Shown here: positions 40,020 through 63,402 of the stretch, piece after piece
How positions within the stretch are numbered: position 1 is the first letter of the stretch
How the letters are laid out: each line of letters starts with the position of its first letter
Assembly (NCBI GenBank): GCA_044892505.1
Contig: CM097882.1
Location: 104,284,001-104,348,000 of the forward strand
Source: Schmidtea nova
Taxonomy: Eukaryota
Reading direction: 5' to 3'
Length of the DNA stretch: 64,000 nt
The notes under the pieces: model-generated
Seen by the model: only the letters and a program-made list of their open reading frames with translations
What the model was told of the DNA's origin: nothing
Databases searched by the model: none
Translations under genes and position numbers: made by a program

Positions 40020-40292
40020 ACCTAAATAACAAGGATGACAAGTTTTACGATGGAATTGATTAAATAGTATTCAAGAAAGATACAAAATGGTATATTGTCG
40101 TTTTGTTTCAAGGAATCAAATATGATGCCGAAAATAACATTTCTCGCGTTTGGAAATTAACTAATGCTATTGAAGCTCATAACTGATTATTATTATTGGA
40201 ACTAGTTTATGTTTAATTTATTTTGTTTAAATATATTTTACTTAGATTTATTTATTTATTTAAAAAAACATAATGACACAATTATAATACAT

Positions 40293-40753
40293 TTATTTTA
40301 AATGATTAAAAATATACAGAAGGGAAACAATTCCAATCAACAATAGCGGAAAATGATTACCAATCTCAGTTCGAAAAATTGATTTCCTTGCATATATTTG
40401 CAGAAATGTGTCTCATCCGCCATTCGCTTTGACCCATGGAATGATTCTTGCTGTATTGATTTCATTGAACCATTTTAGATATTTTTCTTCATAGTCTCCG
40501 GAATCTTTTGAAATCTCCATGGTATATATTATGATGACAACTATTTTAGTCCATGATATTTCTAGCTCAAAGACTTTGTTGACAACATCGAAGAATGATA
40601 GTCCAAAAGATTTTTCGTGAGATCGGAGAAATAAAACCGAAAAGGATGCTTGTTTCCCAGCTCAATTGATTGAAAAACCCTTTCTGTGAGACAAGCCCTT
40701 ATATTTTCGGATTTCTCTTCTTCGGTGAATAATACATTTAAAGTTTCATCCAT
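40293..40753 (-). pseudogene. Bcl-2 family protein (BH3/BH1/BH2 plus C-terminal TM); one frameshift and one nonsense codon
   Basis: ELGNKHPFRFYFSDLTKNL (cf. Bcl-xL AGDEFELRYRRAFSDLTSQL); after the frameshift FFDVVNKVFELEISWTKIVVII (BH1); IIPWVKANGG*DTFLQIY (BH2 W-x3-NGGWDxF, with TGA at 40413-40415); tail FPLLLIGIVSLLYIF. Confidence 0.8.
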
Positions 40754-43639: not shown

Positions 43640-45050
43640 CTATATTTTTTTTGTCGATCTTTTGTTTAGGAAAATTTTTGTCGGTCTTTTGTACAAGTGG
43701 TACAGAGGGCCACTATGATTTTAAGTCGATCTTTTGTATTGGAAAATTTTTGTCGATTTTTTGAATAGGATTTTCTACTCCGAGATTTTTCTCGGGCAAA
43801 AAGAGATACTGGATTTTTGTACAGGGATTTTTATACATGGATTTTTGGTCTGGTATTTTTGTATAGGATGTTTGGTCTAGTATTTTTGAATAGGATTTTT
43901 GGTCTGGTATTTTTGTATATAATTTTGAGCTCCGAGATTTTTCTCGGGCAAAAAGGGACTCTGGTATTTTTGTACATGGAATTTTGGTCTGGATATTTTG
44001 TACATGGAATTTTGGTCTGGTATTTTTGTACATGTAATTCTGGTCTGGACTTTTTGTACATGGAATTTTGGCCTGGTTATTTTGAATAGGATTTTTGGTC
44101 TGATATTTTTGTAAAAGATTTTGAGCTCCGAGATTTTTCTCATGCAAAAAGGGACTCTGGTAAATTTGAACTGAAATTTTTATGGTAAATAAAAAACATG
44201 TGTAAATTTTTTTTAAACTAGTAAAATAGATAGGAATTATTTTGAATAGAATTTTCAATTCCCACAATTTCTCAGGCAAAAAGGGACTCTGGTAATGATC
44301 AACCAAGAAGTGAATCAAACCAATCAAGAATCGAAAATCCAAAAAGAAAGCGACGCCGCTATGAACGCATGGCCGCCACAACCCAGTAATCCCTGCGGTA
44401 ACAGAGACCAAGCATCGAAGCTAATACCAGAAATTATGAAAAAAGTTGGAATTATTATTTCAAACATCATAAAAGACAATTCTAAAGAAATTATTAATTT
44501 AAATTCATTTTTGAAATTTATTAATAATTTTAGACCAATCAAATCTCAGAAAAAATGATTTTAATTTAAAATCGACCTCAATGACAAATGATTTTCAAGA
44601 TAATAAATCAGCGAATAATCAACCAAGAAGTGAATTAAATCAATCAAGAATCCAAAATCCAAAACCCTTTTTTATTAAGTTTTAAAAATTATGTCATTCT
44701 TTTGTCTTTGTAAAATTCTACATGTTTTATTGCCTATTTAACTTAACCATGTGTTTATTACCCTTTTCTTAAATATTCATTTTAAATTTCTGTTCAAAAT
44801 TACCAGTGTCCCTTTTTGCCCTAGAAATTGTGGGAATTGAAAATTCTATTCAAAATAATTTCAATCTATTTTATTAGTTTAAAAGATTTACACGTGTTTT
44901 TATTTACCATAAAAATTTCAGTTCAAAATTACCTGTCCTTTTTTGCCTGAAAAAATTGTGGGAATTGAAAATCTTATTCAAAATAATTTAAAGATAATTT
45001 ACTTGTTAAAAAGAAATTTTACACGTGTTTTTTATTTACATAAAAATCTA
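43640..45050. repeat. Subterminal-type repeat array (ctcgggcaaaaagggactctggta / ttttgtacatggaattttggtctgg), direct at 43640-44295 and inverted at 44790-45050
   Basis: Same family as 8290-8830. Confidence 0.8.
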
Positions 45051-45484
45051 TATTTCAGTTCAGTCAATAAATTATTATTGGAAGAGAGCGATGCATGACC
45101 TCGCATGCGAAGACATTGGTAGGTTCTTCCCATGAACGGGTTGGAAAAAGGAAGGAGCTGGTGCGGGATTTTATAGAGTTTCCCGCAGTTATCTCTTTCT
45201 TAGGCTTCTTTGATTCGATTTTTGATTGGATTTGATTGAATTTCTTTGATGAGATTGGATTTTTTCGTTGCAAATATATGCAAGGAAATCAATTTTTCGA
45301 ACTGAGATTGGTAATCATTTTCCGCTATTGTTGATGGGAATTGTTTCCCTTCTGTATATTTTTAACCATTTAAAATAAATGTATTATAATTGTGTCATTA
45401 TGTTTTTTTAAATAAATAAATAAATCTAAGTAAAATATATTTAAACAAAATAAATTAAACATAAACTAGTTCCAATAATAATAA

Positions 45485-45860
45485 TCAGTTATGAGCTTCA
45501 ATAGCATTAGTTAATTTCCAAACGCAAGAAATGTTATTTTCGGCATCATATTTGATTCCTTGAAACAAAAGGACAATATACCATTTTGTATCTTCTTTGA
45601 ATACAATTTAATCAATTCCATCGTAAAACTTGTCATCCTTGTTATTTAGGTTTAAATATTCTTTGCATTTTAAATCCTTATTGATTTGAACCAGAATTTT
45701 GTTGATGGCGGAAGAATCTTCATTTGATAATGCACTTTTATTAAATGAATATTAAGTTTTTCTCTGTTTCATAAGATTAGGTAATTGGAATTCAGAAGGT
45801 TTTCAAGAAAATATATTCGAAATCCATGATAAATTTTTACAGGCTTTAAATTTATTTGTT
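45485..45860 (-). pseudogene. Decayed homologue of the Polinton accessory gene at 57241-57774
   Basis: SAINKILVQINKDL...WYIVLLFQGIKYDAENNISCVWKLTNAI vs QNISEILLAINKEM...IKIIIQGFKETNNTVRPVWKIIESI; internal stops. Confidence 0.7.
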
Positions 45861-46249: not shown

Positions 46250-46620
46250 AAAAATTTATTTATTTTCCAAATAGTCTTTTTGGAGTTCACATAAAATTAT
46301 CTCCGATACACTTCTTTGACATCTCCCATCACAATTGCATGGGCATTGATTTTCATTAATATTTTTCAGCGATTCTGGTAGATCCAACCATTTGTTAAAA
46401 GATTTGATCAGTTTAGATAAACTGAGCCCTGTATAATTATAAATCTATTATGGAATAATTTCCGGAGCCAAAAAATCAATTTTTGATTAAAATCGGGAAA
46501 CAAGTTGGACAGCTTCCTTAATGCAATACCATATATTCGTTCTGGAAAATAAAATATTAATAAAATCAGGTAAAATATTAAACAACCATTTTTCTCTTCT
46601 ATAATCGAGTGCATTTTGAA
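46250..46620 (-). pseudogene. Decayed homologue of the Cys-cluster gene at 48489-48870
   Basis: SKIDFLAPEII..IYNYTGL...CPCNCDGRCQRSVSEIILCELQKDY vs NNLDYCAPELL..IYQYTGI...CACCHDFKRQQSVHILVAEMRKAY. Confidence 0.7.
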
Positions 46621-46724
46621 AAATGAAATATAAAGAAATCATAATAAGTTTATATACATATTTTATCCAATCAGAAACATGCATTTTCTCTGGATTGCTG
46701 TTTCAATATGTAAATAAAATCGTT

Positions 46725-47062
46725 AACTTTACCACGGCTGAATACATTTACACACAGAGGGTTATAATTGATTAATCTTAATGCGGGAAATAATTCGGGT
46801 TAGAATATGCATTTGGTTGTCTTTGCCAACTTGTAGAAATTTATTATACAACCAATATTTGTCGTGACTGTAACAGATTGAATTCTAAGATTTTCGATTT
46901 TAAATGGTAATTCATTAGCATCAATTGGATTTTTTTACACCCCATGTTGCGACATTTTCCAGAATTAAAGAATAAAATTGGATATTTCCAACTCCTGTCG
47001 ATAATTTGTTGAGGTTTTCTATTTGGAAATTTTATTTTTTTTCTATTGAGCATTAGCCGCAA
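46725..47062 (-). pseudogene. TBP-like pseudogene of the older Polinton
   Basis: IIDRSWKYPILFFNSGKCRNMGCK, a frameshift, then LRIQSVTVTTNIG..F*PELFPALRL..PLCVNVFSRGKV; homologous to 48921-49355. Confidence 0.85.
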
Positions 47063-47104
47063 TAATTTATATTAGTCAAAATTTGTGAAAATTTATGAAA
47101 TATC

Positions 47105-48428
47105 AGTAGGGGATAGTGAGGACACGGGGCCAAGCCATTTATCCCTAAACTGTATATATTACGTAATAATTATACAGTTGCCTACCCCCCCCACCCCCCC
47201 CCACCCCCCACCCCCCCAAAATTACGTAATATTATATATTATTACGTAATCATTACGTAATCATTACATAAGCATTACATAATCATTACGTAATCATTAC
47301 GTAATCATTACGCAATTATTACATAATCATTACGTAATTATTACGTAATTATTACGTCATTATTACGTCATCATTACGTAACTATTATGTAACTATTACG
47401 TAATTATTGCGTAATGATTACGTCATTATTACGTCATTATTACGTAATTATTTACAAAAAATATAAATTCTTACATAACACGAAATCCCTTACGCAATTG
47501 ATGATGTAATACTGTAATTTAATAATTTTTATTTATTTTTTCATAATTTTTACAAAAAATATAAAATAAATTAATTTTTTCAAATTTTTACCCAAAAATT
47601 TCAAAAATGCTCGGATTTAAATAATTTTTATACCAATCTACTGGGAATTCAATGGCGAACAAAAAAGGGTCAAAAAGTAAAAACATGAAAAATTGGTCTT
47701 CTATGGTAAATTTAACATGAAAAAACCTTACTTGGTTAAAAATGGTTAAAATTCAAGATCTTTTACATATAAATAACCATAATTTAACGCTCAACAATAA
47801 AAAGTAATATTAACTAGAAAAACAACAAAAAACACAAAGTATTTAAAAATAAAACTTTATTTAAATAAATCTTCAGGCAAATTGTTCATCAGCAGCATCT
47901 TCACGCACACCCATAACCACATCAATTCCCTTATAATGACCATAAGCCAGACTAACATTTTTTCCCACCCAAAGTCTTTTGTCGTCAAGATTAGTCAAGG
48001 CAATCTTAGAAGATTTATTAGTAAAGAGTTGATGATTCTTACTAACTATTCTCGACTGATCAACAGAAACTATTGAATTATTATTATAACAATCCAGATA
48101 CGACTGATGATTCAGTTTAGTATCCTTCAATGTTATACCCTTAGCCTTAATGCACTCTTCATCACCTAAAAGACTGTAACACTTTGGCCTAAGGAATACC
48201 CACTCATCATACTTGAATCCTTTATTCTCGTCTTTGAATTTACCAATGACGGAATCTAGGTTCCTACTGTATAATGGGTGATTCGGATCATAATTAGAAG
48301 TGTCAAGTAAGTTATCTCTTATCATGGCCGGTAAAAGAATATCAAACTTACAATTTCTAATCTCAAGAAAAAATGAATCGGTGTCACCAGCAACGATGTT
48401 AATTTCGCAGTTGAATTCGTTACGATAT
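47105..48428 (+). repeat. Left TIR (1324 bp), including an antisense copy of the last ~185 PolB codons (ORF 47873-48325)
   Basis: Reverse complement of 61297-62626 apart from a few substitutions and G-run length differences. Confidence 0.95.
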
Positions 48429-48488
48429 AAAAAACAATAAAAAACACAATTTTTAAAATTAATCTTTATTTAAATAAATCTTCAGCAA

Positions 48489-48870
48489 TTAATTTGTATT
48501 GTAAAGGTCATCATAGTATGCCTTTCTCATTTCAGCAACCAAGATATGCACAGATTGTTGTCTTTTGAAATCGTGGCAACAAGCACATCCATTGGTGCAT
48601 GAAACACGCATTGATTCTTTACAAACAATACAATTTTCAACGCACTTGACTCCAGCTCCTAGCACCATATCATAGTGCATTTCAAGCAACTCCTCGATAT
48701 TGATCCCTGTATATTGGTATATTTTATGTACCAACAACTCGGGGGCGCAATAATCGAGATTATTTTTAATCTTTGGATATAAATCTTGGATCTTCTTGAG
48801 AAGTACTTCGAGCAAATAAACTAAAAGAATTAATAAAAATAAAAATAAAAATACTCTTACTTTTTGACAT
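48489..48870 (-). CDS. Polinton accessory protein with Cys cluster (CxxC...CxC), two predicted exons
   Basis: ATG exon 48861-48870 plus a 40-nt GT..AG intron (48860-48821) joins in frame (MSKIYLLEVLL...); a decayed homologue lies at 46250-46620. Confidence 0.7.
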
Positions 48871-48920
48871 TTTCAAATTTTAACAATCAATGAGTAACAA
48901 TTAATTCAAACAAAATTTAT

Positions 48921-49355
48921 TTAATTAATTAATGTATTTATTTCATTAATTATATTTTCCACATAATTTTTAAAATCCAAAGTTTTAATTCCAAGCATAA
49001 CTACTTTTCCGCTGCCAAAGACATTGACACATACTGGATCAAATTTCTGTAGACGTAATGCTGGGAATATTTCTGGTTCGAACCAACAACGACATTTCTT
49101 TTGTAATTCATATAAATTAATAAATTTGCCGACATCGACCGTTACAGTAATTGATTGAATCTCTAAATTTTTAATCTTGAATTTCAAATCCCCCGGCTTT
49201 AACGGTTGTTTGCATCCCATTACCCGACACTTGCCAGATTTGAAGAAGATGATGGGGTACTTGCCGCTTCTGTCAATAACTTGTTTCGGTTTGCCACTCG
49301 GGAATATCATGCCGGGAACTAAACATTTACCTTTATAATTGATGTTGCTCAACAT
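48921..49355 (-). CDS. TATA-binding-protein (TBP)-like protein, minimised (144 aa)
   Basis: IQSITVTVDVGKFINLYEL..WFEPEIFPAL..VNVFGSGKVVMLGIK vs TBP IQNMVGSCDVKFPIRLEGL..SYEPELFPGL..LLIFVSGKVVLTGAK; first repeat IIFFKSGKCRVMGCK vs ALIFSSGKMVCTGAK. Confidence 0.85.
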   Translation of the reverse strand: MLSNINYKGKCLVPGMIFPSGKPKQVIDRSGKYPIIFFKSGKCRVMGCKQPLKPGDLKFKIKNLEIQSITVTVDVGKFINLYELQKKCRCWFEPEIFPALRLQKFDPVCVNVFGSGKVVMLGIKTLDFKNYVENIINEINTLIN

Positions 49356-49410
49356 TTTTGATTAATTAAACAAATATAAACAATATTAAATTAAACAATA
49401 ATTAATTAAA

Positions 49411-50034
49411 ATGGAATTAAGAAATGATGCCGTATATCAAATAGTAGGACCCAGCGGGAGTGGGAAAACCTTGTTTGTATGTAAATTATTACAATCAAAA
49501 ATGTTTAAATCGCAATTCAATAAAATTTATTGGCATCGGGGTGCTGATGAAGAACATGGATTGACTCAAGATCAGTTTTGTAAATTAAAAATGACTATTA
49601 TAAAAGGTTTTGACAAAAATTGGTCATCTAGATTACAACATGGTGATGTTATAATTATCGATGATTTGTACCAGGAAGCCAATAAAGAAAAAGATTTCAA
49701 CAATTTATTTACAAAAATTAGTAGACACTTGGGTGTTACAGTTATTTTCATTACTCAAAATTTATTCCATCAAGGTGGTAGTCATAGAACCCGGAATTTA
49801 AATGTACAATATTTGGTTATATTCAAAAACCCCCGAGATGCAACAATTATTGATTTTCTTGCAAGACAAGCATACCCTAATGATAGAAAATTTTTACTTG
49901 ATTCATTTCAAGATGCAACTAAAATTCCTCATGGATATCTGTTTTTCGACTTTACACAACAATGTCCTGATGATTTACGTATAAGAACTGATCTTTTCAA
50001 TGAAAAAGGTATAACAGTTTATAAACAAAATTGA
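49411..50034 (+). CDS. A32/FtsK-like genome-packaging ATPase
   Basis: Walker A GPSGSGKT, Walker B IIIDDL, ISRHLGVTVIFITQN, FKNPRD. Confidence 0.93.
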   Translation: MELRNDAVYQIVGPSGSGKTLFVCKLLQSKMFKSQFNKIYWHRGADEEHGLTQDQFCKLKMTIIKGFDKNWSSRLQHGDVIIIDDLYQEANKEKDFNNLFTKISRHLGVTVIFITQNLFHQGGSHRTRNLNVQYLVIFKNPRDATIIDFLARQAYPNDRKFLLDSFQDATKIPHGYLFFDFTQQCPDDLRIRTDLFNEKGITVYKQN

Positions 50035-50057
50035 AATCGTAAAATTAATTAATTAAA

Positions 50058-50222
50058 ATGTCATTCAAAAAAGTCGTTGTTCGACCCGTTATTGGAAAAT
50101 CCGATAAACAACAAAACTTAAAGGTAAAGAAGATGTCATTAAAGAAGACATCATTAAAGAAGATATCATTGAAAAAGAAGTCAAAAATCAAGAAATCAAA
50201 GAAGAAATGGATTAAATTATAA
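50058..50222 (+). CDS. Small Lys-rich protein (54 aa), candidate DNA-condensing core protein
   Basis: MSFKKVVVRPVIGKSDKQQNLKVKKMSLKKTSLKKISLKKKSKIKKSKKKWIKL, 22 of 54 residues basic; a shorter basic ORF sits in the same slot of the old copy (~63286). Confidence 0.5.
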   Translation: MSFKKVVVRPVIGKSDKQQNLKVKKMSLKKTSLKKISLKKKSKIKKSKKKWIKL

Positions 50223-50234
50223 ACAAAACAAATT

Positions 50235-50582
50235 GTGAAAAATCTGCTAATAATGAAAATTGAACGCAGTTTACCATATTTTAATGCCTTGATAAAGGCT
50301 CCAATTAATAAACGTATGATAATCTTACAGGCTTTTCCCCCATTTGTTATTGATGATTTGCTTGAGGTTATTGTTAATGTAATTCGTGGTAATGTAAATA
50401 TTAGTAAAGCCAAAAGATTACGGCTACAAAAACATAAAAGATCACTTTTATCACTAGTCAACACTAAAAATCGTAATCTTATGCGTAAGATAATTTATAA
50501 ACAAAATGGAGGTTTCCTAGGTACATTAATTCCAATAGTATTATCAGCTATAAGTGCAATTTCATCATTAAATGGGAACTAA
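50235..50582 (+). CDS. Putative virion protein with a protease site and an adenovirus pX-like C-terminal peptide
   Basis: KQNGG|FLGTLIPIVLSAISAI resembles pX MRGG|ILPLLIPLIAAAIGAV; the old copy reads KQQGG|FIAALLPLALSLLGG. Confidence 0.7.
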   Translation: MKNLLIMKIERSLPYFNALIKAPINKRMIILQAFPPFVIDDLLEVIVNVIRGNVNISKAKRLRLQKHKRSLLSLVNTKNRNLMRKIIYKQNGGFLGTLIPIVLSAISAISSLNGN

Positions 50583-50760
50583 AAATTCAATACCCGATAA
50601 ACATAATTTAGACTTGAATATATTAACATCTTGTTGTAACAATGAAGGAAATATTAACCAAAAAGAAGGTATCCAAAAATCAATTAAAAAAGATTTGGAC
50701 AAACCCAAAAGATCCCGATGGGTTTGCTGGGGTAAACAAAATTTCAAAAAGAGTAAATAA
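50572..50760 (+). CDS. Small putative myristoylated/palmitoylated protein overlapping the integrase 5' end
   Basis: MGTKNS..SCCN..KRSRW; the frame is conserved in the old copy at 63832-63990 (MGNNSS..SCCN..KRSRF). Confidence 0.55.
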   Translation: MGTKNSIPDKHNLDLNILTSCCNNEGNINQKEGIQKSIKKDLDKPKRSRWVCWGKQNFKKSK

Positions 50761-51750
50761 TTCAAAGAAAGATACCCAAAAATGGTTATCTGATCAATTA
50801 GCATATAGTTTAAATAAACCAATGTTGAAAAGATTTCCTACACGAAGTTACAAAACAATTGGTGTTGATGATTTGTGGCAAATGGATTTAATGGAAATGA
50901 TACCTTTTTCAAAAATAAATAATGGATACAAGTATATTTTGACTTGTATTGATGTGTTTAGTCGCTATGCACGTGCAGTTCCAACAAAAACTAAATCTGC
51001 AAATGAAATGGCTGAAGCTATAAAAACTTTATTTGCAGATGGGCAACCTCGAAATTTACAAACTGATTTGGGTAAGATTTTAATTTAATTTAATTTAATT
51101 TAAATTTTATTCTAGGTAAAGAATTTTATAATAGTAAAGTTAAAGAAATTATCAAGGGTATTAATCATTACTCTGTATTTTCACAATTCAAGGCAGCTGT
51201 TGTTGAAAGATTCAATCGAACTCTGAGAGATAAATTGAAAAAATACTTTGTTTTTCAAGGAAATAAAACTTGGATAAATGTTTTGCCTAAATTGATTTAT
51301 AGTTATAATTATTCTCCCCATAAAGGAATACAAGGAAAGCGACCCATTGATGTTTATTCTACAAATAATATGGATAGTTGGTTATCTGAACAAAGAAAAT
51401 CAATAAAGAAAAAGCCAAAATACAGGGTCGGTGATCATGTTAGAATCAGTAAAATCAATGGATCCCCCTTTATCAAGAATTTTGACAATAATTGGAGCGA
51501 TGAAGTTTATCAAATCTCGAAAATCAATACAAATCAGAACCCGGTCATGTACTTTATTACCGATTCTGAAAATAATGAAATCAGTGGGAAATTCTATGAA
51601 CAAGAGTTACAAGTCATTCCAGCCCCATCAGTATTCAGAATTCAAAAGATTTTAAAAACCAGAATGGTTGGCAAATATAAACAATATTATGTTCAATGGC
51701 ATGGGTATGAAAAACCCACTTGGATATCTGAAAACCAATTGATTAAATAA
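50642..51750 (+). CDS. Retroviral-type (c-int) DDE integrase with C-terminal chromodomain-like region; one 44-nt intron (51072-51115)
   Basis: WQMDL, QTDLG|KEFYN after splicing, VVERFNRTL, YYVQWHGY. Confidence 0.93.
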
Positions 51751-51755
51751 ATATT

Positions 51756-52793
51756 ATGAAAGAAAACCAGTTTTATATGATTTTGCCTAGCAATGCATGT
51801 CCTCTTATTTATCCTAATAATGAAGCTAGTAATTTTAATGTAGAATTTCAAAATCCGATTTATTTAAATAGTAATGACGATTGGGAAGTTGCTTTGATTG
51901 ATTTTACTTTTGTGTATAATTTGTTCCCGTATTATAGTAATTCTTTTATTCAAATTGAAACTAAAAGAGAAATTCAAGAAATTAGTTATTTGAGAATCAA
52001 TAATCAAAAAAAAACATTCCAAGTTATAGTTTCTCAACCTAGTTCAGACACTGATGTATTTATTGAAAAATATGAATATTTGGTGTTTGTTTGCCCACAT
52101 GTTCCATTTAAAATTACATTTCCAGATCTTGAACATGCAAAAAGTTTTGGATTGGAAAATGCAACAATTACAAGTGAAAATGATCATTATCGCTTAAAAT
52201 TACCAAAATTCACTAATGATAATAGTGTTGAACAATTTGGAATTTTATTAAATTATGACATTAAAACTGTTAATGATTATTATTTTCAAGAAGAATTATT
52301 CATAACATCATTACCAGAACTGCAAGGATATTTAATGAAAATTAATCCATCTCCATTTAAAGAAATGAAACTTGTCAATAATGAATTGGTTAAAATTATT
52401 CTTCAGGATAATATTTCAAAAATTACTTTTGATTCAAATTTAACCAAATCTCTGGGTCTACAGAAACAAACATATAATGATACAGAAATAATCGGTGTAA
52501 AAATCCCCAAAATTTTACAACTTCATCAGCAAATGTTCATTTACAGCAACATTATCGAACCAGTAACTGTTGGAGATGTACGAGTTCCCCTCCTAAAATC
52601 AATTTGGATCAAGAAATATGACCAAGGTGAAGTTGTACAAATTGAAATAAAGAATCCAATGTATTTGCCGATTTCAACATCAACTATAAACAACATTGAA
52701 ATCAATATTCGTGATGACAGTGGAAAATTAATTAAATTTTCAAAAGATACAAAGACTCATTTGACTCTACATTTTCGTAAAATAAATGATTAA
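51756..52793 (+). CDS. Minor capsid protein (penton) 1
   Basis: FYMILPSN...WEVAL and IYSNIIEPVTVGDVRVPLLK...NPMYLP...IEINIRDDSG motifs. Confidence 0.85.
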   Translation: MKENQFYMILPSNACPLIYPNNEASNFNVEFQNPIYLNSNDDWEVALIDFTFVYNLFPYYSNSFIQIETKREIQEISYLRINNQKKTFQVIVSQPSSDTDVFIEKYEYLVFVCPHVPFKITFPDLEHAKSFGLENATITSENDHYRLKLPKFTNDNSVEQFGILLNYDIKTVNDYYFQEELFITSLPELQGYLMKINPSPFKEMKLVNNELVKIILQDNISKITFDSNLTKSLGLQKQTYNDTEIIGVKIPKILQLHQQMFIYSNIIEPVTVGDVRVPLLKSIWIKKYDQGEVVQIEIKNPMYLPISTSTINNIEINIRDDSGKLIKFSKDTKTHLTLHFRKIND

Positions 52794-53808
52794 AAAGGAT
52801 TTTTATGTAAATTTACCAAGCAATTCTTGCCCATTGACACATCCTAATAATAAAGCTGGAAAATTCAATGTTGAATATCAAAACCCGATTTATTTGGATG
52901 GTAGTTGGGAAGTTGCTCTTATGGATTTTACTTTTGTGTACAATGAATTTCCGTTTTATAATAGTTCAAGTATAAAATTTACTAGAAGTGAATTACATTC
53001 TAGTTATGAATATTTCAATTTTAACCAACAAAAGAATGAATATGATATTAGTCACGATTCCAACTATTATTTGATGTATATTGATGGCAATATTTTAAAT
53101 GTAAATTGTAAATATTTTCCATTTCAAATAATATTTGATAATGTTGAAGAAGCTAGAAAATTAGGGTTTCAAGAAAAAGCTGTGACATTTAATGATGAAT
53201 TAAACAAAATTAAAATTCCTGCAAATGAAAATAAAAAACTTGATGATACTATACGATTTACTATAACTTATACTTTTCCTGTTGAATATACAGATAATTT
53301 CAAAGACGATTTAATAATAAATAATCTTACTGAATTATCTGATCAAATTGAAACTTTTTATCCACATCCATTTAAAGTGATTGATATTAAAGAAGGAAAA
53401 TTAATTAAATTAATTCTTGAAGATGATATAACTAGTGTAAAATTTAGTTGGAATTTAGCAAATTCGTTAGGATTAGTTGAACAAGAATTCTTTGACAAAA
53501 TTATTGATGGTGTATATTACCCACAAGTTTTAAAACTTCATCAACAAATGTTCATCTATACGAATATTATTCAACCAATTCTTGTTGGTGACATGTCAGT
53601 TCCCCTATTGAAATGTGTTTGGGTTGAAAAACATAAAAAGGGTGATTTGGTTCAAATTGTTGAGAAAAATCCAATGTATTTACCGGTCAGTTCCACATAT
53701 ATAAACAATATAGAAATCAATATTCGTGATGACAGTGGAAAAATAGTTAAATTTGCAAAACAAGACAAGACTTACTTGACATTACATTTCCGTAAAATAA
53801 ATGAATAA
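52786..53808 (+). CDS. Minor capsid protein (penton) 2
   Basis: Same terminal motifs as penton 1 with a divergent centre. Confidence 0.85.
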   Translation: MIKKDFYVNLPSNSCPLTHPNNKAGKFNVEYQNPIYLDGSWEVALMDFTFVYNEFPFYNSSSIKFTRSELHSSYEYFNFNQQKNEYDISHDSNYYLMYIDGNILNVNCKYFPFQIIFDNVEEARKLGFQEKAVTFNDELNKIKIPANENKKLDDTIRFTITYTFPVEYTDNFKDDLIINNLTELSDQIETFYPHPFKVIDIKEGKLIKLILEDDITSVKFSWNLANSLGLVEQEFFDKIIDGVYYPQVLKLHQQMFIYTNIIQPILVGDMSVPLLKCVWVEKHKKGDLVQIVEKNPMYLPVSSTYINNIEINIRDDSGKIVKFAKQDKTYLTLHFRKINE

Positions 53809-54208
53809 TCCAGATATTATCAGTTTCTATAGCAACAGTCAATCAGGTGGAGAATTACCGTATTTTGTAGGTAAGCAATATGGAACTGGTTGGTTAAAAA
53901 CGATAGGTAGATTTGCATTACCAATTCTTAGACGTATTGGAAATTTCGGTATGAAAACTGCCAATGATGTGTTAAATAATAATTCAAAGATTTTACCTGC
54001 ACTAAAGTCCAATGCCATTTCTGAAATTAAAGATTCATTACCCGATGTGATTCATCATTTGCCACAAGTAATTAATAAAGTAACTGATGTGTTTAACGAA
54101 AATAAAACTGAAAATAAACAAAATGGCGGAATTCTTAAACGTAAAAGAAATATGAAGAAACATATAAACAAAAGAATGAAAGGATATGGAACAATATTTG
54201 AAAAATGA
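53801..54208 (+). CDS. Conserved Polinton core protein with QxGG sites and an amphipathic helix (pVI-like)
   Basis: QSGG|ELPYFVGKQYGTGWLKTIGRFALPILRRIG; QNGG| followed by a basic tail. Confidence 0.7.
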   Translation: MNNPDIISFYSNSQSGGELPYFVGKQYGTGWLKTIGRFALPILRRIGNFGMKTANDVLNNNSKILPALKSNAISEIKDSLPDVIHHLPQVINKVTDVFNENKTENKQNGGILKRKRNMKKHINKRMKGYGTIFEK

Positions 54209-55431
54209 TTAGTGCAAAATCTGAATTATGTCTTTTTGACAGACCATCTCCACAAGCAGTGATTGAACATGGGGCATTTGAAGATATTTACCCAACAAAT
54301 TCAATTACAGATGCTGGAACATCATCTATTCAATTTTACATCAACGGATCTCAAACTGAATATTTAGATTTGAACGATACTTTACTATCTCTTCAGGTCA
54401 AAGTTGTAAACAAATCGGGTGAAAATTTAGGATTGGATGCTGATGTTACTCCCAACAATTTCTTTTTCCAAACTCTTTTTAAAGAAGCCGAATTAATTTT
54501 CAATTCTACTAAAGTTGAAGGAGGAAATGATACATTTACACACAAAGCCATGATTGAAACTATTCTCAACTACAATAATGATACAAAACACACATCTTTA
54601 ACTCCAATGGGATACAATGAACATGATCTTACTAGAAAAACATGGATTGCAAAATCAAAACCATTTTCAATTTGTTCTCCATTACATTTCGATTTCATGG
54701 AACAACCCAAGTACTTATTACCAGGTGTAAGTGTTCAAATTAAATTGACGAGATCAAACCCAGCCAATAGTTTAACATGTACAAAAATTGAACCTATAAT
54801 TGAATTATTAGAGGCAAAATTAATGGTTAGAAGAGTTCGAGTTGAACCATCAGTTTTGGCTGGGCATCAAATTGGACTTGGTACAAGAAATGCAATTTAT
54901 CCAATAAGAAATAAGGAAGTCGTAGAATTTTCATTGCCAATGGGATCTTCGTCATTTTATAAAGAACAAATCTTTGGTGATAGACGATTACCAAACTTTA
55001 TTCTTGTAGCATTTCAAGGTAATAAAAGACACGGTGGTTCCTTTACTGAAACTTATTCTATTTACGATCATTTTAATGTCAAATCATTAACTTTATCGAA
55101 AGGAAGTGATTATCGTGAAAAATATTCTCAAGATTTTGAAAATGATAATTGCAGTACTAGTTATATGCAATCTATTATCCGTAACCTTGGTTACCTAAAT
55201 AAGAGTATGAATTGTGGTATTTCATTAGCAGATTGGAAAACCAAATATCCTTTTTTCACCTTCGTTTTGGCTCCAGATTTTGATCTAAATCAAAGTCAAT
55301 TACCACAACAGGGTAATTTAAGACTTGATATTAAATTTGGTACACCATTGACTGAATCAGTTTCTGTAATTGTATATGGAGTTTTTGAAAAGGAATTACA
55401 AATTACAGCTAATCGAACAATACTGGTTTGA
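54205..55431 (+). CDS. Major capsid protein (double jelly-roll), 408 aa
   Basis: KSELCLF, EYLDLNDTLL, TLFKEAEL, LHFDFMEQPKYLLPGVSVQIKL, LRLDIKFGTPL; its position between pentons and protease fits. Confidence 0.9.
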   Translation: MISAKSELCLFDRPSPQAVIEHGAFEDIYPTNSITDAGTSSIQFYINGSQTEYLDLNDTLLSLQVKVVNKSGENLGLDADVTPNNFFFQTLFKEAELIFNSTKVEGGNDTFTHKAMIETILNYNNDTKHTSLTPMGYNEHDLTRKTWIAKSKPFSICSPLHFDFMEQPKYLLPGVSVQIKLTRSNPANSLTCTKIEPIIELLEAKLMVRRVRVEPSVLAGHQIGLGTRNAIYPIRNKEVVEFSLPMGSSSFYKEQIFGDRRLPNFILVAFQGNKRHGGSFTETYSIYDHFNVKSLTLSKGSDYREKYSQDFENDNCSTSYMQSIIRNLGYLNKSMNCGISLADWKTKYPFFTFVLAPDFDLNQSQLPQQGNLRLDIKFGTPLTESVSVIVYGVFEKELQITANRTILV

Positions 55432-55524
55432 GCAGAGCTCAAACATTACTGGTTTGAGCAGAGCTCAAACAATACTGGTTTGATTAAATGGTTATAAACT
55501 AATTTGACAAAAATTTATCATCAA

Positions 55525-55908
55525 ATGAAGTAAGATTTTAATTTTATTTAAATTTTTATTTTTATTAGTTCTATTCAGATTGAATATATTGCTAGAAAAT
55601 TATTGGGATCGGAATTTCTTGGTGTTTTTCCGTTGGATAAAATTCCATATATTGATGTAAACAAAGCTTTGATTGTCAATACTCAATCATCAAACCTTAA
55701 TGGTGAACATTGGATTGCAGTTTATGTAAAACCCGATAAAATACACGTGTTTGATCCAATGGGATTTTATTATCCGCCGCTATTGATTAAAAAACTATCG
55801 TCAATGATGATGCCAATTGAATATAACAGAATCCGATACCAGAATCCAATGACAAAAACATGTGGTCAGCACTGTATAGCGTGGTTAATAAAAATGTTTA
55901 ATAAATAA
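55525..55908 (+). CDS. Adenain-like cysteine protease; one 39-nt intron (55530-55568)
   Basis: Spliced start MN|SIQIEY..FLGVFPLD; catalytic GEHW, FDPMG, Q...CGQHC. Confidence 0.92.
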
Positions 55909-57240
55909 ATATTTGTATTGAATATTTGTATTATTTTTAATTCATAATTTTAATTAAATTAGTTTTGTTTAATATTTTACGTTGCGGTAATCTAATTCGT
56001 GTGCTCGTGTGTGTATCCATGGAAATTTTGGTGTGTTGTGTATCATGTAATAATTAAGTATATAAACGAGAAAAAATCATTTTAAAATCACTTTTTACTT
56101 GATCCCAACTTTGGTAAGTTAATTTTTGTTAAAAATCTTTTGAATTAATTTTTATTATTTTTAGAATTTTGCGATATCGAATTTAAAAAATTATGAATTT
56201 TAACGAAGAAAATATGAATTTTAATGAAAAAAGCAATTATTTTGTAAATATCCTAAAGAAAAATGTCAAATGTAAGTATTGTTACAATTGTATTTAATAT
56301 ATTATCATTCTAAAATTAAATTCAAATTAATTGAATATTAGTTAATTTGAATTTAAATTTAGAAAGTTATATAATTATTAATTTTTAATGTTAATTTAAT
56401 ATTTACTGATAATATTTTCTGATTTTAATATTTATTGATTTTAATATTTATTGATAATAATATTTACTAATGTTTATTAACTTTTATTTTTTAATGATAG
56501 TTGTTATATTTTATTATTTTAATGTTAATTTAAATTATTTGAATATTTAAATAATAAACTATTTGAATTATTTAAATATCTATTTAATTTGAATTAATAA
56601 TGATTTTTGGAAATTTACTGATAATATTTACTGATTTTAATTTTTATTGATTTTAATATTTATTGATAATAATATTTACTAATGTTTATTAACTTTTATT
56701 ATTTAATGATAGTTGTTATCTTTTAATGTTAATTTAAATTATTTGAATATTTAAATAATAAACTATTTGAATTATTTAAATATCTATTTAATTTGAATTA
56801 ATAATGAATTTTGGAAATTTAAAGATATTTTAATTAATTTTAATTATTTGATTATTTAATTTGAATTTATATGCAAAATCAAGCAAAATGAATTTTGGAT
56901 AATATAAAAGATATGTTAATTAATTATTTAAATAATACATTAGTTTAATTATTTAAATATTTATTTAATTTGAATATTAATTTTATATGCAAAACTAATT
57001 ATTTAAACAAAATGGATTTTGGATAATATAAAAGATATGTTAATTAATTTTAATTATTTAAATAATACATTAGTTTAATTATTTAAATATTTATTTAATT
57101 TGAATATTAATTTTATATGCAAAATTAAATATTTTAACAATATGAATTATGTTATTAAACATTTAAATAAAAAACTAATCTATTTTATAATAGTTGTAAG
57201 CTAAATATTTGAATAAAAGACAAGATTTGAAAATTAAAGT

Positions 57241-57774
57241 TTATTCATATAAAATAGATTCTATTATCTTCCAAACTGGTCTGACTGTATTGTTTGTTTC
57301 TTTAAAACCTTGTATTATTATCTTGATTTGAAACATTGAATTTTCTTCATGATTTTCAAAATTACAATCTTTATTAATATTCATGAAAGTAAAATTTTCA
57401 TTAAATCGCATTTCTTTATTGATTGCTAGTAAAATTTCACTTATATTTTGTCTATCGATATCTCCAATCTTTCCAACTTGAATGTTGTATAACGATTGTT
57501 TCAATGTAACTGGTTCCTATAAATAAAATAATAATTGTTTTTTAATAAATTAATTAATTACCTTAAATGAATATGTTATTGGGAATTTTAAATATTCCAT
57601 CGAATATTGAAGAAATTGCACTGCAGGATTTCTGATCAAATTAGCTGCCGAAATAGAATTTTCTTCAAGAATAATTTTCATAACTTCTTGTTTGGTCATC
57701 TTTTTCGATCCTAAAATAAAAAATTAAAAAATATTCATTTTTAAATAATAAAACTAACTTTTAAGTTGAAACAT
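57241..57774 (-). CDS. Polinton accessory protein (146 aa, three predicted exons); possibly OB-fold SSB-like
   Basis: Exons 57759-57774, 57562-57710 and 57241-57516 join in frame through 48- and 45-nt GT..AG introns; homologues at 45485-45860 and 40022-40186. Confidence 0.7.
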
Positions 57775-58033
57775 TTTTAAAATGAAATCTATATTTTGTT
57801 AGATCATTTATATATGTTTTCTAAATTTTATATTATCCAATCAAAATTCGTTTAACATTTTATTTGATTTTCATTGATTATTATTTATGTGTGCAGATAC
57901 ACGCTTTATTGATATTTTTTAATTGATTGTTAATTTTATATATGCATATTTTTAATATTTTTTATTTTTTATAGGCGGATTATATCCCCAATATTGTCAT
58001 TCATCTTATCATGATGAAACCTGTCATGATTCG

Positions 58034-61000
58034 ATGGAGCGATATTATTCTTATACACATAACCGCATCTCTTACCTTATTTGTCCCATTTGTAAATCGA
58101 CTTCTGTTTCTTCTTATGTAGACTTTTATAAGCTTCATTGTGAACATTTGAATCAATTTCAATGTTCTAAAAAATCGATTNNNNNNNNNNNNNNNNNNNN
58201 NNNNNNNNNNNNNNNNNNNNNNNNNNNNNNNNNNNNNNNNNNNNNNNNNNNNNNNNNNNNNNNNNNNNNNNNNNNNNNNNNNNNNNNNNNNNNNNNNNNN
58301 NNNNNNNNNNNNNNNNNNNNNNNNNNNNNNNNNNNNTGTGATCCCACCCCAAATAAATTAATTAAATTAAATGAAATAGTTGTTCTTTCTGACGACGACG
58401 ATATAGTGATTGTTTCTGATGACGATGATATAGCTGTTCCCTCTGAAATAGTTGTTCTTTCTGATGATGAACCCATCATAGATGTTCAATATGGTGGGTC
58501 CCTTCTTCCTAATGTTAAATTTGATTTGAGAAAATCTCACGCCGTTGTGAAAATGGATGTTTCTCACTTGGTTTTGAAAACTTTAATTTTACCTGATATT
58601 TTAATTAATAAATTAAATAATGTTATTAATGAGATGGGTTCAGTGAAAATACAATTTTGTATTGATGTAGAGTTTGAAAAAGATGGTGAATTTCAATCAT
58701 TTATCATTTCAAACTCTGCGAGACCCATGAGTGATACCTTTTTTGACGAGGGTATTGCTCTTTTAAATGAAAAGATATCATTAATTAACGATAAAGGGAG
58801 TAATTGGGTTATTAACAAAGTTAATGAAATCCATTTCGTTGTAACAAAATTTGCTCAAATTAGTCGATTGAGTGGCAGAGGTCATATTGAAACCCCTCAA
58901 TCTTTACAATTAAAATATTGTACAGTAAACGTAAGAAATTCTGACGACTTGTGTTTCATTTATAGCATTTTAGCTATTTTAAAATATGATGAAGTTGATG
59001 GACATAGATATAGGACTAGTAGTTATAATCTTTCTGATCTTGACTTTGTCCGTTCTGATTTACCGATGAGACTTTGTAATATTCCGAAATTTGAGGCTAA
59101 AAACCCTGGACTTGCTATTAACGTTTTTTCATATGATGAGGATGCTTTACTTGATACATTGGCAAATCCTGAAGTTTTTAAACACCCTTGTGTCGATATA
59201 ATTCATAGGTCGAAAGTTGTTGGTGGTACTCCTATTAACTTGATTTTGTTGGAAAGTGGTGATGCATATCATTATATTGCAGTCACCGATCTAGATAGGC
59301 TTTTGAATTATCGCAATCACCATTTTTCAGATACTCGAGTACAAAGTATTTGGTGTCATCGATGCTTGAATGGATTTCGAAAACAGGAAGCATTCGATTG
59401 TCATCAACAGTTGTGTGCTAAAAATCAATTAGGCACAACTCTTTATACTCTGCCTAGAAATAAAAATTTGAAATTTAGTAATTGGGGCAAAACAATTACC
59501 CCACCTTTTGTTGTTTACGCCGATTTTGAGGCAATCTTACCTACTGATGAAAAATATTTTCAAAGACATGTCCCAATATCTGCCGGTCTTTTACTTGTAA
59601 ATAATTTCACTGGAGAAAAGATTTACAAGAGTTTCTTAGGTCTTGATTGCGTTACTAATTTTCTTACTGAAATTAGTAATATTTCTGAAACTATTGTTTA
59701 TCCCTTTTATAGAACTAATTACAAGAAACCTCTTTTTATGACATCGGCTAATCAACAATCTTTTGATTCTGCTACTATTTGTTATCTTTGTAAGAAAACT
59801 TTAGTACAACCAGTTAGAGACCATGATCACTACACTGGTGAATATTTGGGAGCTGCTTGTAATTCTTGTAATCAATCCCGTCGTTTATACAAGTTTTTAC
59901 CCGTTATTTTTCATAATTTAAAGGGTTATGACTTGCACCATATTCTTAAATATGGTTTGGCTAATTTTTCAACTTGGAAAATTTCTTGCATTCCTACAAC
60001 TAGCGAAAAGTTCTTGACATTGTCTGCAAGGGTTGGTGATTTAACAATTAAATTCATCGATTCTTGTCAGTTTGTAAATTCTAGTTTAAATGACGCTGTT
60101 AAGACTCTTACTTGTTTGCCTTTGACTAGATCTGAATTCACCGGGACTATTGTTGACTGTAAGGGTATTTTTCCTTATGATTTTGCAACATCTTTAGAAA
60201 TTCTTAACAACACTTATGAGTTGCCACCAATCTGGAAAGGTGTTAAACAAGACGAATATGACAAGGCATTGGTGATTTGGAGGGAATCCCAGTGTCAAAC
60301 TCTTTGTGACTATATGATGGTCTACCTTAAACTGGATGTTTTTCTTCTTGCTGATTTCTTTCAACAGTTTAGGGCTAAATCTATAGCTCACAATAGACTT
60401 GAGCCTTTGAATTTCTTGGGGATTCCAGGTATGTCGTGGGCTTCTGCGCTTATTACCTTGGATGAACCTATTGAGTTGCTCCAGGATATGGAAATTTATA
60501 ATTTTTTCGAAGGGGGGATCCGTGGTGGATTGACATTTGTCAACAAGCATCACGTAGTATCCTCCGAAACGACTGAACTTTTATATATTGACATAAATAA
60601 TTTATACGGGTGGGCTCTAAGTCAAAAATTACCTTATGGTGAATTTAGTTGGATCACAGATCAAAATAAATTAAATAAATTAATTAAATTAATGGATGCT
60701 GATTTGGCTATTTTGACTTATGGCGTGACTTTTGAAGTGGATCTTGAAATCCCTTCAGAAATTCACGATAAATTAAATGATTTTCCGGTTGCAGCAGAGA
60801 AAATGTGTGCTCCCGGTTCAAAAGTTGAGAAGTTAATGCTTACGCATTATCCAAAGTTCAACTATGTTGTTCATTGGAGGCTTCTCAAGCTTTTTGTTTC
60901 TTTGGGTGTTAAAATAACACGAGTTCATCGGGCTGTTCAGTACAAACAGAAACCCATCTTTAAAAAATATATTGATACGAACACTGAACTTAGGGCAGCT

Positions 61001-61852
61001 TCTTCTACGGCTTTAGATAAAAACTATTACAAACTTTTAAATAATAGTCTTTATGGGAAAACGGTTGAAAATCTTAAGAAACGACTCAATTTACGACTAT
61101 GTAATTCAGCATCAAAACTGATTACATATACTTCAAAACCTACCTTTAAAAAAACTTATAGAATTGATGATGACCTAGTTTCTGTCTTGCTTAATAAGGA
61201 CTCTGTGTGTTTAGATAGACCCAGCTACATTGGTCAAACTGTACTGGATTTATCTAAACTTAGGATGTACCAGCTGCAGTATGAAGAGTTACAAAAATAT
61301 CGTAACGAATTCAACTGCGAAATTAACATCGTTGCTGGTGACACCGATTCATTTTTTCTTGAGATTAGAAATTGTAAGCTTGATATTCTTTTACCGGCCA
61401 TGATAAGAGATAACTTACTTGACACTTCTAATTATGATCCGAATCACCCATTATACAGTAGGAACCTAGATTCCGTCATTGGTAAATTCAAAGACGAGAA
61501 TAAAGGATTCAAGTATGATGAGTGGGTATTCCTTAGGCCAAAGTGTTACAGTCTTTTAGGTGATGAAGAGTGCATTAAGGCTAAGGGTATAACATTGAAG
61601 GATACTAAACTGAATCATCAGTCGTATCTGGATTGTTATAATAATAATTCAATAGTTTCTGTTGATCAGTCGAGAATAGTTAGTAAGAATCATCAACTCT
61701 TTACTAATAAATCTTCTAAGATTGCCTTGACTAATCTTGACGACAAAAGACTTTGGGTGGGAAAAAATGTTAGTCTGGCTTATGGTCATTATAAGGGAAT
61801 TGATGTGGTTATGGGTGTGCGTGAAGATGCTGCTGATGAACAATTTGCCTGA
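58034..61852 (+). CDS. Protein-primed DNA polymerase B polyprotein (N-terminal extension, terminal-protein region, endonuclease VII-like insert)
   Basis: VYADFE exonuclease motif, RDHDHYTGEYLGAACNSCN, FHNLKGYD, YIDINNLYGWA, KLLNNSLYGK, GDTDS, KCY, KAKG. An N gap at 58181-58336 leaves N-terminal continuity unproven. Confidence 0.95.
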   Translation: MERYYSYTHNRISYLICPICKSTSVSSYVDFYKLHCEHLNQFQCSKKSIXXXXXXXXXXXXXXXXXXXXXXXXXXXXXXXXXXXXXXXXXXXXXXXXXXXXCDPTPNKLIKLNEIVVLSDDDDIVIVSDDDDIAVPSEIVVLSDDEPIIDVQYGGSLLPNVKFDLRKSHAVVKMDVSHLVLKTLILPDILINKLNNVINEMGSVKIQFCIDVEFEKDGEFQSFIISNSARPMSDTFFDEGIALLNEKISLINDKGSNWVINKVNEIHFVVTKFAQISRLSGRGHIETPQSLQLKYCTVNVRNSDDLCFIYSILAILKYDEVDGHRYRTSSYNLSDLDFVRSDLPMRLCNIPKFEAKNPGLAINVFSYDEDALLDTLANPEVFKHPCVDIIHRSKVVGGTPINLILLESGDAYHYIAVTDLDRLLNYRNHHFSDTRVQSIWCHRCLNGFRKQEAFDCHQQLCAKNQLGTTLYTLPRNKNLKFSNWGKTITPPFVVYADFEAILPTDEKYFQRHVPISAGLLLVNNFTGEKIYKSFLGLDCVTNFLTEISNISETIVYPFYRTNYKKPLFMTSANQQSFDSATICYLCKKTLVQPVRDHDHYTGEYLGAACNSCNQSRRLYKFLPVIFHNLKGYDLHHILKYGLANFSTWKISCIPTTSEKFLTLSARVGDLTIKFIDSCQFVNSSLNDAVKTLTCLPLTRSEFTGTIVDCKGIFPYDFATSLEILNNTYELPPIWKGVKQDEYDKALVIWRESQCQTLCDYMMVYLKLDVFLLADFFQQFRAKSIAHNRLEPLNFLGIPGMSWASALITLDEPIELLQDMEIYNFFEGGIRGGLTFVNKHHVVSSETTELLYIDINNLYGWALSQKLPYGEFSWITDQNKLNKLIKLMDADLAILTYGVTFEVDLEIPSEIHDKLNDFPVAAEKMCAPGSKVEKLMLTHYPKFNYVVHWRLLKLFVSLGVKITRVHRAVQYKQKPIFKKYIDTNTELRAASSTALDKNYYKLLNNSLYGKTVENLKKRLNLRLCNSASKLITYTSKPTFKKTYRIDDDLVSVLLNKDSVCLDRPSYIGQTVLDLSKLRMYQLQYEELQKYRNEFNCEINIVAGDTDSFFLEIRNCKLDILLPAMIRDNLLDTSNYDPNHPLYSRNLDSVIGKFKDENKGFKYDEWVFLRPKCYSLLGDEECIKAKGITLKDTKLNHQSYLDCYNNNSIVSVDQSRIVSKNHQLFTNKSSKIALTNLDDKRLWVGKNVSLAYGHYKGIDVVMGVREDAADEQFA

Positions 61853-62626: not shown

Positions 62627-62694
62627 AATATCTGGTATTTATAGTTCATTAATTAAATCAATATAAACAATATCTATTACTTTGTAATTAGAAA

Positions 62695-63262: not shown

Positions 63263-63402
63263 TATCATTATAAAAAAATATAAAAATGGCATTCAAAAAC
63301 TTTATGATGAAGAAACTTTCAAAGAAAAAAATCAAAAAAGCTGTCGAATTATGAACTTTTTCCTATAAAGAAACAAACAAAGAAACGAAGAAATAAAAAG
63401 AG

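Follow-up and report, generated by a model that had tools for sequence, protein, structure and literature searches.

A truncated TATA-binding protein paralogue is a hallmark gene of a Polinton clade and is predicted to serve a conserved TATA-type box

A 64,000-nucleotide stretch of the Schmidtea nova genome (assembly GCA_044892505.1, contig CM097882.1, positions 104,284,001 to 104,348,000 of the forward strand; hereafter the window, in whose own numbering all coordinates are given) contains a Polinton/Maverick element which encodes a truncated paralogue of the TATA-binding protein (TBP). The gene, here called TBPL (48921-49355, minus strand), is a hallmark gene of one Polinton/Maverick clade. 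In the same clade, a strand-specific TATA-type box lies at a short distance before the genes that run from the packaging ATPase to the capsid protein (the module), and it is generally missing before TBPL itself. Read from sequence, this arrangement predicts that TBPL is the element's own core-promoter factor for the boxes, and that it recruits the host transcription factor TFIIB and RNA polymerase II (Pol II); we hold this with middling confidence. To our knowledge, the accepted Polinton gene set includes no element-encoded transcription factor, and we know of no mechanism described for the switch of a Polinton/Maverick from silent passenger to virus-like expression.

TBPL is an intact open reading frame (ORF) of 144 amino acids (aa), from ATG to stop, a length which is unusual for DNA with about 30% G+C. 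It matches the Pfam TBP family PF00352 in a single stretch, residues 64-139 (E=2.3e-13, 50.2 bits; the curated cut-off is 22.9 bits). Comparison with PDB sequences gives 35 matches, every one of which is a TBP or a TBP-containing fusion chain. The best of these are archaeal TBPs (E about 1e-11), with eukaryotic TBPs at 1e-8 to 1e-5; these values do not by themselves indicate the origin of the gene. Residues 14-141 align to positions 40-176 of the NCBIfam archaeal TBP models. An AlphaFold model built with 61 family members as input has a predicted local distance difference test (pLDDT) of 97 and a predicted template modelling score (pTM) of 0.86. When this model is compared with the PDB by Foldseek, the top 44 matches are all TBPs (E about 1e-8, query-normalised template modelling (TM) score 0.65-0.77); the alignments span 164-178 columns, and the target TBP cores have about 170-190 residues. 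The preliminary description of this DNA, made from the letters alone, had called an intact 144-aa TBP gene here, and the call was correct.

The two halves of the protein differ. Repeat 2 is complete in the AlphaFold model (residues 62-143), with the order S1-H1-S2-S3-S4-S5-H2. Repeat 1 is invisible to the PF00352 search, which reports the one stretch only. It is recognisable by the alignment to the NCBIfam models, by the AlphaFold model, and by profile-profile comparison of the N- and C-terminal halves of the family, in which hhalign places residues 23-52 onto residues 98-127 with a probability of 92% (E=6e-7); the region matched by the N-terminal half is the S3-S5 part of the repeat. In the model, residues 2-48 form strands only, four instead of five, and are followed by a short linker (residues 49-61). 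There is no helix in residues 1-61, and both repeat-1 helices (H1 and H2) are lost; the model suggests that strand S2 and the N-terminal stirrup are probably gone as well. Both repeats can thus be recognised, as had been claimed, and repeat 1 is indeed shortened, with a linker in place of the helix that joins the repeats; two complete tandem repeats are not present. TBPL is a truncated TBP paralogue.

The DNA-kinking and TFIIB-contacting positions were assigned from the known yeast, human and archaeal TBP complexes. Residue counts refer to the 61-member alignment of the family. The three intercalating phenylalanines named in the preliminary description are nearly invariant (F38 in 60/61 members, F97 in 60/61 and F113 in 61/61). 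The stirrup which contacts TFIIB is also kept at the sequence level: E93 is found in 58/61, P94 in 55/61, E95 in 59/61 and I/L96 in 59/61, and the E-P-E aligns to the E-P-E-Q-F-P stretch of archaeal TBPs. The register position of the fourth phenylalanine is mostly occupied by Pro, Lys or Ser. A phenylalanine at position 18, four residues upstream of this register position, is present in 47/61 members; judged from the alignment, F18 might stand in for the missing fourth intercalating residue.

TBPL is found throughout the clade. A word-indexed search returned 12 proteins of 103-181 aa, with PF00352 present in 12/12. An exhaustive profile search returned 57 clusters at E<1e-30 and many further end-to-end alignments at 140-180 aa. 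One metagenome scan alone contributed 77 loci, and more than 80 metagenomic loci are known overall. On most contigs longer than a few kb, TBPL is adjoined by Polinton genes. A separate set of long contigs was picked by ATPase (seven contigs) or capsid (two contigs), not by TBP; a PF00352 gene is present on 8/9 of these, or 8/8 evaluable contigs, as the ninth stops right before the site where its closest relative has TBPL. The preliminary description had presented TBPL as a family gene, and its spread bears this out. The IMG/VR collection contains essentially none of this clade: scans with the TBPL family profile gave one distant TBP match only, and scans with the capsid protein, the capsid profile and the ATPase found no relatives.

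It could be asked whether TBPL is a fragment of a captured host gene, carried as a functionless passenger. Polintons do acquire host genes, and Bcl-2-like and TRAF/MATH genes occur at the same spot in relatives. However, the median pairwise ratio of nonsynonymous to synonymous substitution rates (dN/dS) is 0.18 over 41 pairs, and TBPL genes are under purifying selection. The truncated architecture is uniform over the whole clade, and even a distant branch with only 31-37% identity retains it at a length of 144-171 aa. Together with the presence of the gene on every evaluable contig picked regardless of TBP, this makes a passenger hardly credible.

The neighbourhood of TBPL varies among relatives. 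Of 28 loci which contain both genes, 18/28 have TBPL ahead of the ATPase gene and read in the same direction, and 7/28 have the two head-to-head; in some loci it is found downstream of the protease gene. The head-to-head layout first noted in the window, across a 55-bp spacer with TATAAA, is therefore accurate for this element but is not a rule of the clade. In one relative (L087), a Bcl-2-family gene (3563-3940, minus strand; PF00452, E=5e-10) lies between TBPL and the ATPase gene. Genes with TRAF/MATH domains lie beside TBPL in two others (L084, 7923-8912; L090, 854-1858 and 5476-6447). This suggests that the TBPL neighbourhood is a hot spot for captured host-interaction genes, and the nature of the accessory genes suggests an animal host for some relatives. 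The clues to the host conflict, as large exons free of introns and very short leaders would point to a protist or fungus. Other than the Bcl-2-like gene, the neighbouring small ORFs of the window and its relatives have no Pfam match, and no TFIIB-like or other partner of TBPL was recognised among them by Pfam. L084 also has the pol gene of a long terminal repeat (LTR) retrotransposon (1-2937) beside an element relative with a fragmentary TBP gene (56 aa called); this neighbour and the fragmentary gene indicate that the copy is integrated in a genome and decaying, and is not a free virus.

The second component is the box. The motif TATAAACA(A) is strand-specific in the clade, and includes the TATAAA of the TBPL-ATPase spacer. 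There are 15 copies of the 9-mer TATAAACAA in the window, where 4.1 would be expected, and 0/100 shuffles reach 15. Eight copies are in the element that carries TBPL, all on the strand of the ATPase-to-capsid module, and three more are in the older copies, again in the sense orientation. The spacer itself (49356-49410; 55 bp, 93% A+T) has TATAAA at 49375-49380. This hexamer is not significant alone, as 61% of shuffles also contain it; it is the first copy of the box, oriented toward the ATPase gene. The eight copies, all on the plus strand, are located at 49375-49383 (27 nt before the ATPase ATG), 50020-50028 (29 nt before the ATG of a small ORF at 50058), 50218-50226 (26 nt before ATG 50253, which is in frame with the pX-like gene), 50496-50504 (137 nt before the integrase-region ATG 50642), 51676-51684 (71 nt before the start codon of the 345-aa gene), 52685-52693 (92 nt before that of the 340-aa gene), 53700-53708 (92 nt before that of the 135-aa gene) and 54163-54171 (33 nt before the capsid ATG).

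The same pattern is seen in related loci, where the box is found 85 times on the module strand and twice on the other; about five are expected from composition. Measured from the end of the box, the next ORF that opens with an ATG lies at a median distance of 29 nt. The distances cluster sharply at 24-37 nt, and 91% of boxes lie within 120 nt of such an ORF compared with 28% of random positions. In independently chosen contigs the strand counts are 65 and 2, with no box ahead of TBPL (0/6), and in a distant relative with 42% GC they are 8 and 0. The share of genes with a box was counted with at most one mismatch and at most 130 nt upstream. It is high for the ATPase (18/22), the pX-like gene (9/11), the 135-aa gene (8/8) and the capsid gene (10/10), intermediate for the 340-aa genes (7/12) and the integrase (6/13), and low for the protease (2/10) and TBPL (6/59, none exact). 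Ahead of the gene for family B DNA polymerase (PolB) there is one match among seven related loci, several of which are clipped by contig ends, and none in the window. The suggestion that the element supplies its own basal factor gains indirect support here, from a conserved, strand-specific box at a short fixed distance before the module genes and missing before TBPL. Two other motifs give a modest signal in a k-mer search upstream of TBPL: TCATAATT, which is initiator-like, 1-9 nt before the ATG in 15/59 loci, and TTTGTTT about 50-60 nt upstream in 22/59 loci. From their sequence and position, these may represent a second promoter class for TBPL.

The spacing bears on whether the box is a TBP site at all. 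It might instead be a site for a host forkhead-type factor, or a 3'-end or polyadenylation signal of the preceding gene, with the target of TBPL elsewhere. ATAAACA fits the forkhead core consensus RYAAAYA, boxes sit between or at the ends of tandem genes, and the link between the protein and the motif is indirect. Against this, the boxes keep a narrow distance of 24-37 nt to the ATG and are strictly in the sense orientation, both of which are core-promoter-like. The ATPase gene, the first of the module, has its box in a divergent spacer and is preceded by no gene on the same strand. Several other boxes are located some 100 nt within the coding region of the gene before, and cleavage there would truncate the mRNA. 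We regard a role of this kind as unlikely.

The sequence of the box is more constrained than a TATA hexamer. Anchored on TATAAA, the sites ahead of module genes have C at position 7 in 89% and A at position 8 in 89%; for control sites upstream of TBPL and protease genes the figures are 20% and 40%, respectively. The conservation of C and A after TATAAA indicates that the unit is an 8-9-mer. The footprint of TBP on DNA is 8 bp, the same length as the box, and position 7 is the single point at which TATAAACA deviates from canonical TATAWAWR. In the literature, a search for the 9-mer retrieved unrelated papers only.

Host TBP could also be the reader of the boxes, in which case TBPL would act on the host by competing for TATA boxes or for TFIIB while failing to support assembly of the full complex, as a dominant-negative or interfering protein; the preliminary description had raised a similar possibility. 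The box does contain a fully canonical TATAAA, and the promoter class of TBPL differs from that of the module genes. The protein retains a TFIIB-type stirrup and three intercalating phenylalanines and has lost the repeat-1 helices used by many host partners, which would also suit a competitor. However, interference leaves unexplained why C7 and A8 match the TATAAA core in conservation among elements whose proteins are only 40-50% identical. Squelching would also be costly for an integrated element, and the young copy in the window has near-identical terminal inverted repeats (TIRs) and every gene except the integrase in a single frame. Interference with the host thus seems improbable to us.

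A third possibility is that TBPL is an architectural protein which bends DNA for replication, integration or packaging, for instance at A+T-rich sites near the termini. TBP-fold domains bend DNA, bending factors are common at the origins of protein-primed replicons, and TBPL is often near an element end. Nevertheless, there is no TATAAACAA within the 1.3-kb TIRs of the window element, and the only conserved candidate sites track gene starts. TBPL also keeps, nearly without variation, the stirrup residues which in cellular TBPs touch TFIIB, and a purely architectural role is quite improbable.

The reading of TBPL as a core-promoter factor can be set out as follows. TBPL would be expressed from a promoter without a box, and would then occupy the 8-9-bp TATAAACA(A) boxes ahead of the ATPase, core-protein, integrase and capsid genes. 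Its retained phenylalanines would kink the DNA, and the C-terminal stirrup (E-P-E-I/L-F-P) would bring in host TFIIB and Pol II. Module transcripts would begin a few nucleotides ahead of each ATG; given the TATA-to-start spacing of Pol II, the distance of the box would set the start just before the ATG. As the repeat-1 helices are gone, TBPL should escape the host partners which dock there, and truncation of repeat 1 would in this way free it from TFIIA, TAF1, Mot1, NC2 and Brf1. TBPL, PolB and perhaps the protease would form a box-less promoter class. What we infer is the identity of the factor on the box (TBPL and not host TBP), the recruitment of TFIIB, a split of expression into early and late, and the escape from host regulators. 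No RNA polymerase is present among the Pfam-searched ORFs of the element; a TBP paralogue with its key residues kept, in an element lacking a polymerase, makes the pairing of TBPL with the box the most economical reading. A stronger version, which we put forward tentatively and think rather doubtful, is an orthogonal core-promoter system, in which the remodelled first half of a TBP of one and a half repeats (about 145 residues) would read the non-canonical 3' half of the box, with its conserved C at position 7 of TATAAACA, and the loss of the repeat-1 helices would insulate the protein from TFIIA, TAF1, Mot1, NC2 and Brf1. The morphogenesis genes would then answer to the element's own factor and not to host TBP.

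Our confidence in TBPL as a core-promoter factor is no higher than middling because the link from protein to box is indirect, and because host TBP or a forkhead core are possible explanations of the motif. Several observations weigh against it. TATAAA is also bound by host TBP, and the box therefore needs no special factor; the forkhead consensus is fitted as well. The fourth intercalating phenylalanine is out of register, and 58/61 members have Ser in place of the central Asn of repeat 2, such that DNA binding could be weakened and not retargeted. The E-P-E stirrup goes back to the ancestor of the two TBP repeats, and its retention may be structural. A second, smaller cluster of boxes, at about 66-92 nt from the ATG in the related loci, belongs to a class at about 70-100 nt that is left unexplained by a strict TATA-to-start geometry. 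The distant relative L092 has a TBP gene and no exact 8-mer on the module strand, where only a 7-mer is present. Finally, the IMG/VR scans provided no TBPL-free Polinton clade as a control for co-variation of the gene and the box.

The carrier of TBPL is a bona fide Polinton/Maverick, as judged from PolB, integrase, TIRs, target-site duplication, ATPase, protease and capsid; its placement beside an ATPase/integrase/capsid module in a Polinton had been recognised from the start. The young element is a 15,522-bp unit (47105-62626) bounded by TIRs of about 1.3 kb which are 99% identical (left, 47105-48428; right, 61297-62626, overlapping the 3' end of PolB). The hexamer AATATC flanks it on both sides (47099-47104 and 62627-62632); a target-site duplication of 6 bp is typical of Polintons. 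Each TIR contains an array of C-rich 11-nt tandem repeats (47178-47533 and 62203-62536). The TIRs also extend over the 3' end of PolB, and a 150-aa ORF in the left one (47873-48325, minus strand) is therefore a duplicate of the polymerase C-terminus.

The genes of the module are all encoded on the plus strand. The packaging ATPase, of Pox_A32/FtsK-HerA type (49411-50034, 207 aa; PF04665, Pox_A32, E=2e-6), is followed by a small ORF of 54 aa (50058-50222), at the place of which relatives have a gene of 53-79 aa. The pX-like gene (50235-50582, likely start ATG 50253) has a weak match to the adenovirus mu/pX core-protein family PF05829 (E=1.5e-5); its C-terminal part barely reaches the threshold of the model, with 25.2 against 25 bits. 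This match is a hint that the clade possesses a DNA-condensing protein of adenovirus type. The integrase (50642-51750) has an rve core (E=2.5e-8) and a chromodomain. It is split into two frames in the window by one break of the frame-change type, and relatives have a single ORF of about 344-396 aa; the break could also be a short intron. Next are a 345-aa gene with no fold match (51756-52793) and its 45% identical tandem paralogue of 340 aa (52786-53808). Relatives have one to three copies of this gene (three in L087), and no family or structure match was obtained for either paralogue. They may be penton or other capsid components; no minor (penton) capsid protein was recognised among the genes of the young element. 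A 135-aa gene conserved in the clade (53801-54208) precedes the gene for the major capsid protein (54205-55431, 408 aa), which has a double jelly roll fold (AlphaFold pLDDT 90). The capsid profile has no match among PDB sequences, and the protein was identified by fold comparison only; the top Foldseek matches are the major capsid proteins of iridovirus, PBCV-1, mavirus and Sputnik (E about 1e-15).

Beyond the capsid gene lie two genes with no box upstream, both on the plus strand: an adenovirus-type cysteine protease (55603-55908; PF00770, Peptidase_C5, E=9e-6) and the protein-primed PolB (58034-61852; PF03175, E=1e-30), which contains a masked run of N (58181-58336). The gap between them includes a very A+T-rich segment with direct repeats (56380-57134, about 16% G+C). 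Downstream of TBPL is a 108-aa ORF without a family match (48489-48815, minus strand), of which a weak copy occurs in the older element (46262-46522).

The young element lies within an older relative. A decayed copy of TBPL, found within the outer bounds 46725-47029 (minus strand), corresponds to residues 18-118, with one or more frame changes and with neither end detectable. A decayed ATPase copy (62695-63256, plus strand), with one frame change and a box ahead of it at 62662-62670, is present on the opposite side of the young element, and a decayed pX-like copy is also found just outside its right end. With a decayed TBPL on the left and a decayed ATPase on the right, the insertion target of the young element was the spacer between the TBPL and ATPase genes of an older relative. 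Remnants of this relative occupy 46262-47029 and 62695-63759, and it runs past the end of the window. The second, decayed TBP gene of the preliminary description is thus real; it is not a tandem paralogue, as it belongs to the older element which hosts the insertion. Remnants of the capsid, 135-aa and 340-aa genes at 37023-40052 (minus strand) make up a third, likewise decayed fragment of this Polinton family, in which a sense TATAAACAA at 38983-38991 lies ahead of the capsid remnant.

Several known systems resemble TBPL in part. Cellular and archaeal TBPs (PF00352) have the same fold over both saddle halves, and solved examples are 21-26% identical to TBPL. The S4 phenylalanine of both halves, the C-terminal stirrup phenylalanine and the E-P-E stirrup are common to both. 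TBPL is smaller (about 145-170 aa, compared with about 180 aa for the cellular TBP core), its repeat 1 is without H1, H2 and probably S2, and, unlike cellular TBP, it is encoded by a mobile, virus-like element. The metazoan TBP-related factors TRF2/TLF are TBP paralogues that serve promoter subsets. Both repeats are full-length in these factors, but the intercalating phenylalanines and TATA binding have been lost, whereas TBPL keeps the phenylalanines and truncates a repeat.

TBP-fold proteins also occur in viruses. Those of Nucleocytoviricota (mimivirus, phycodnavirus and asfarvirus B263R types) match TBPL in a Foldseek comparison with BFVD, with E down to 5e-8. They are 190-500 aa long and 10-18% identical to TBPL, which is below the identity of cellular TBPs, and they serve viruses which have their own RNA polymerase, whereas the TBPL element encodes none. 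In beta- and gammaherpesviruses, the TBP-fold proteins BcRF1, UL87 and ORF24 read TATT-type late promoters, a non-canonical TATA variant ahead of late, structural genes, and recruit host Pol II. These late mimics are the nearest functional analogue, and the same logic would apply to TBPL if, as proposed, it is paired with TATAAACA ahead of capsid and packaging genes. However, they are far larger and act in a multi-protein viral complex, and element type, motif and architecture all differ from those of TBPL. Herpesvirus entries are weak Foldseek matches (E 4e-3 to 2e-2). With such weak fold matches and no partner genes recognised, the likeness is an analogy of logic and not one of membership.

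A gene labelled 'TBP' has been drawn before in elements of this general kind. Starrett et al. (2021; PMC8502044, Fig. 5) use the label in non-animal MELD/Polinton-like viruses, which have adintovirus-like PolB and integrase and in which TRAF-like genes are labelled too. In that paper it is a figure label only, without analysis of architecture, distribution, selection or promoters. The TRAF/MATH genes beside TBPL in L084 and L090, together with the TRAF-like labels of that figure, make a common lineage possible, and TBPL and the labelled genes may belong to one lineage. Apart from this paper, the searched literature contains none that treats a TBP gene as a Polinton gene. The view that TBP lies outside the canonical Polinton genes is qualified by this label. 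A TBP gene in such elements is not wholly new; as far as searched, the truncated architecture, the hallmark status, the selection and the box are undescribed.

The remainder of the window contains further features. Pieces of a host formin are found 13 kb apart, with GBD/FH3 in a 497-aa ORF (19873-21366) and FH1/FH2 in a 637-aa ORF (34296-36209). The interval holds a perfect 380-nt palindrome (32857-33655) and, on the minus strand, two ORFs which could not be annotated (26974-28909); the formin pieces could derive from a single gene that insertions have interrupted, or from two genes. A pair of 421-nt inverted repeats (94% identical; 39982-40402 and 45269-45689) brackets about 4.9 kb and encloses a repeat-rich 232-aa ORF (43713-44411). 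This region may be another mobile element. Scans of the window for Rfam families and for tRNA genes gave no match.

For annotation, the box is an aid in its own right: it marks gene starts in these elements, very small genes included. TBPL would be the smallest natural TBP-fold protein which keeps the DNA-kinking and TFIIB-facing residues, and it is useful for asking which minimum parts of a TBP are needed for promoter recognition. If the proposed pairing is true, TBPL and its box would constitute a defined regulatory circuit for this Polinton clade. It would be the third independent viral use of the TBP fold for late genes, after giant viruses and herpesviruses. Should the orthogonal system also be true, a Polinton would have a two-tier programme, with an early factor and a late box, comparable to late transcription in herpesviruses.

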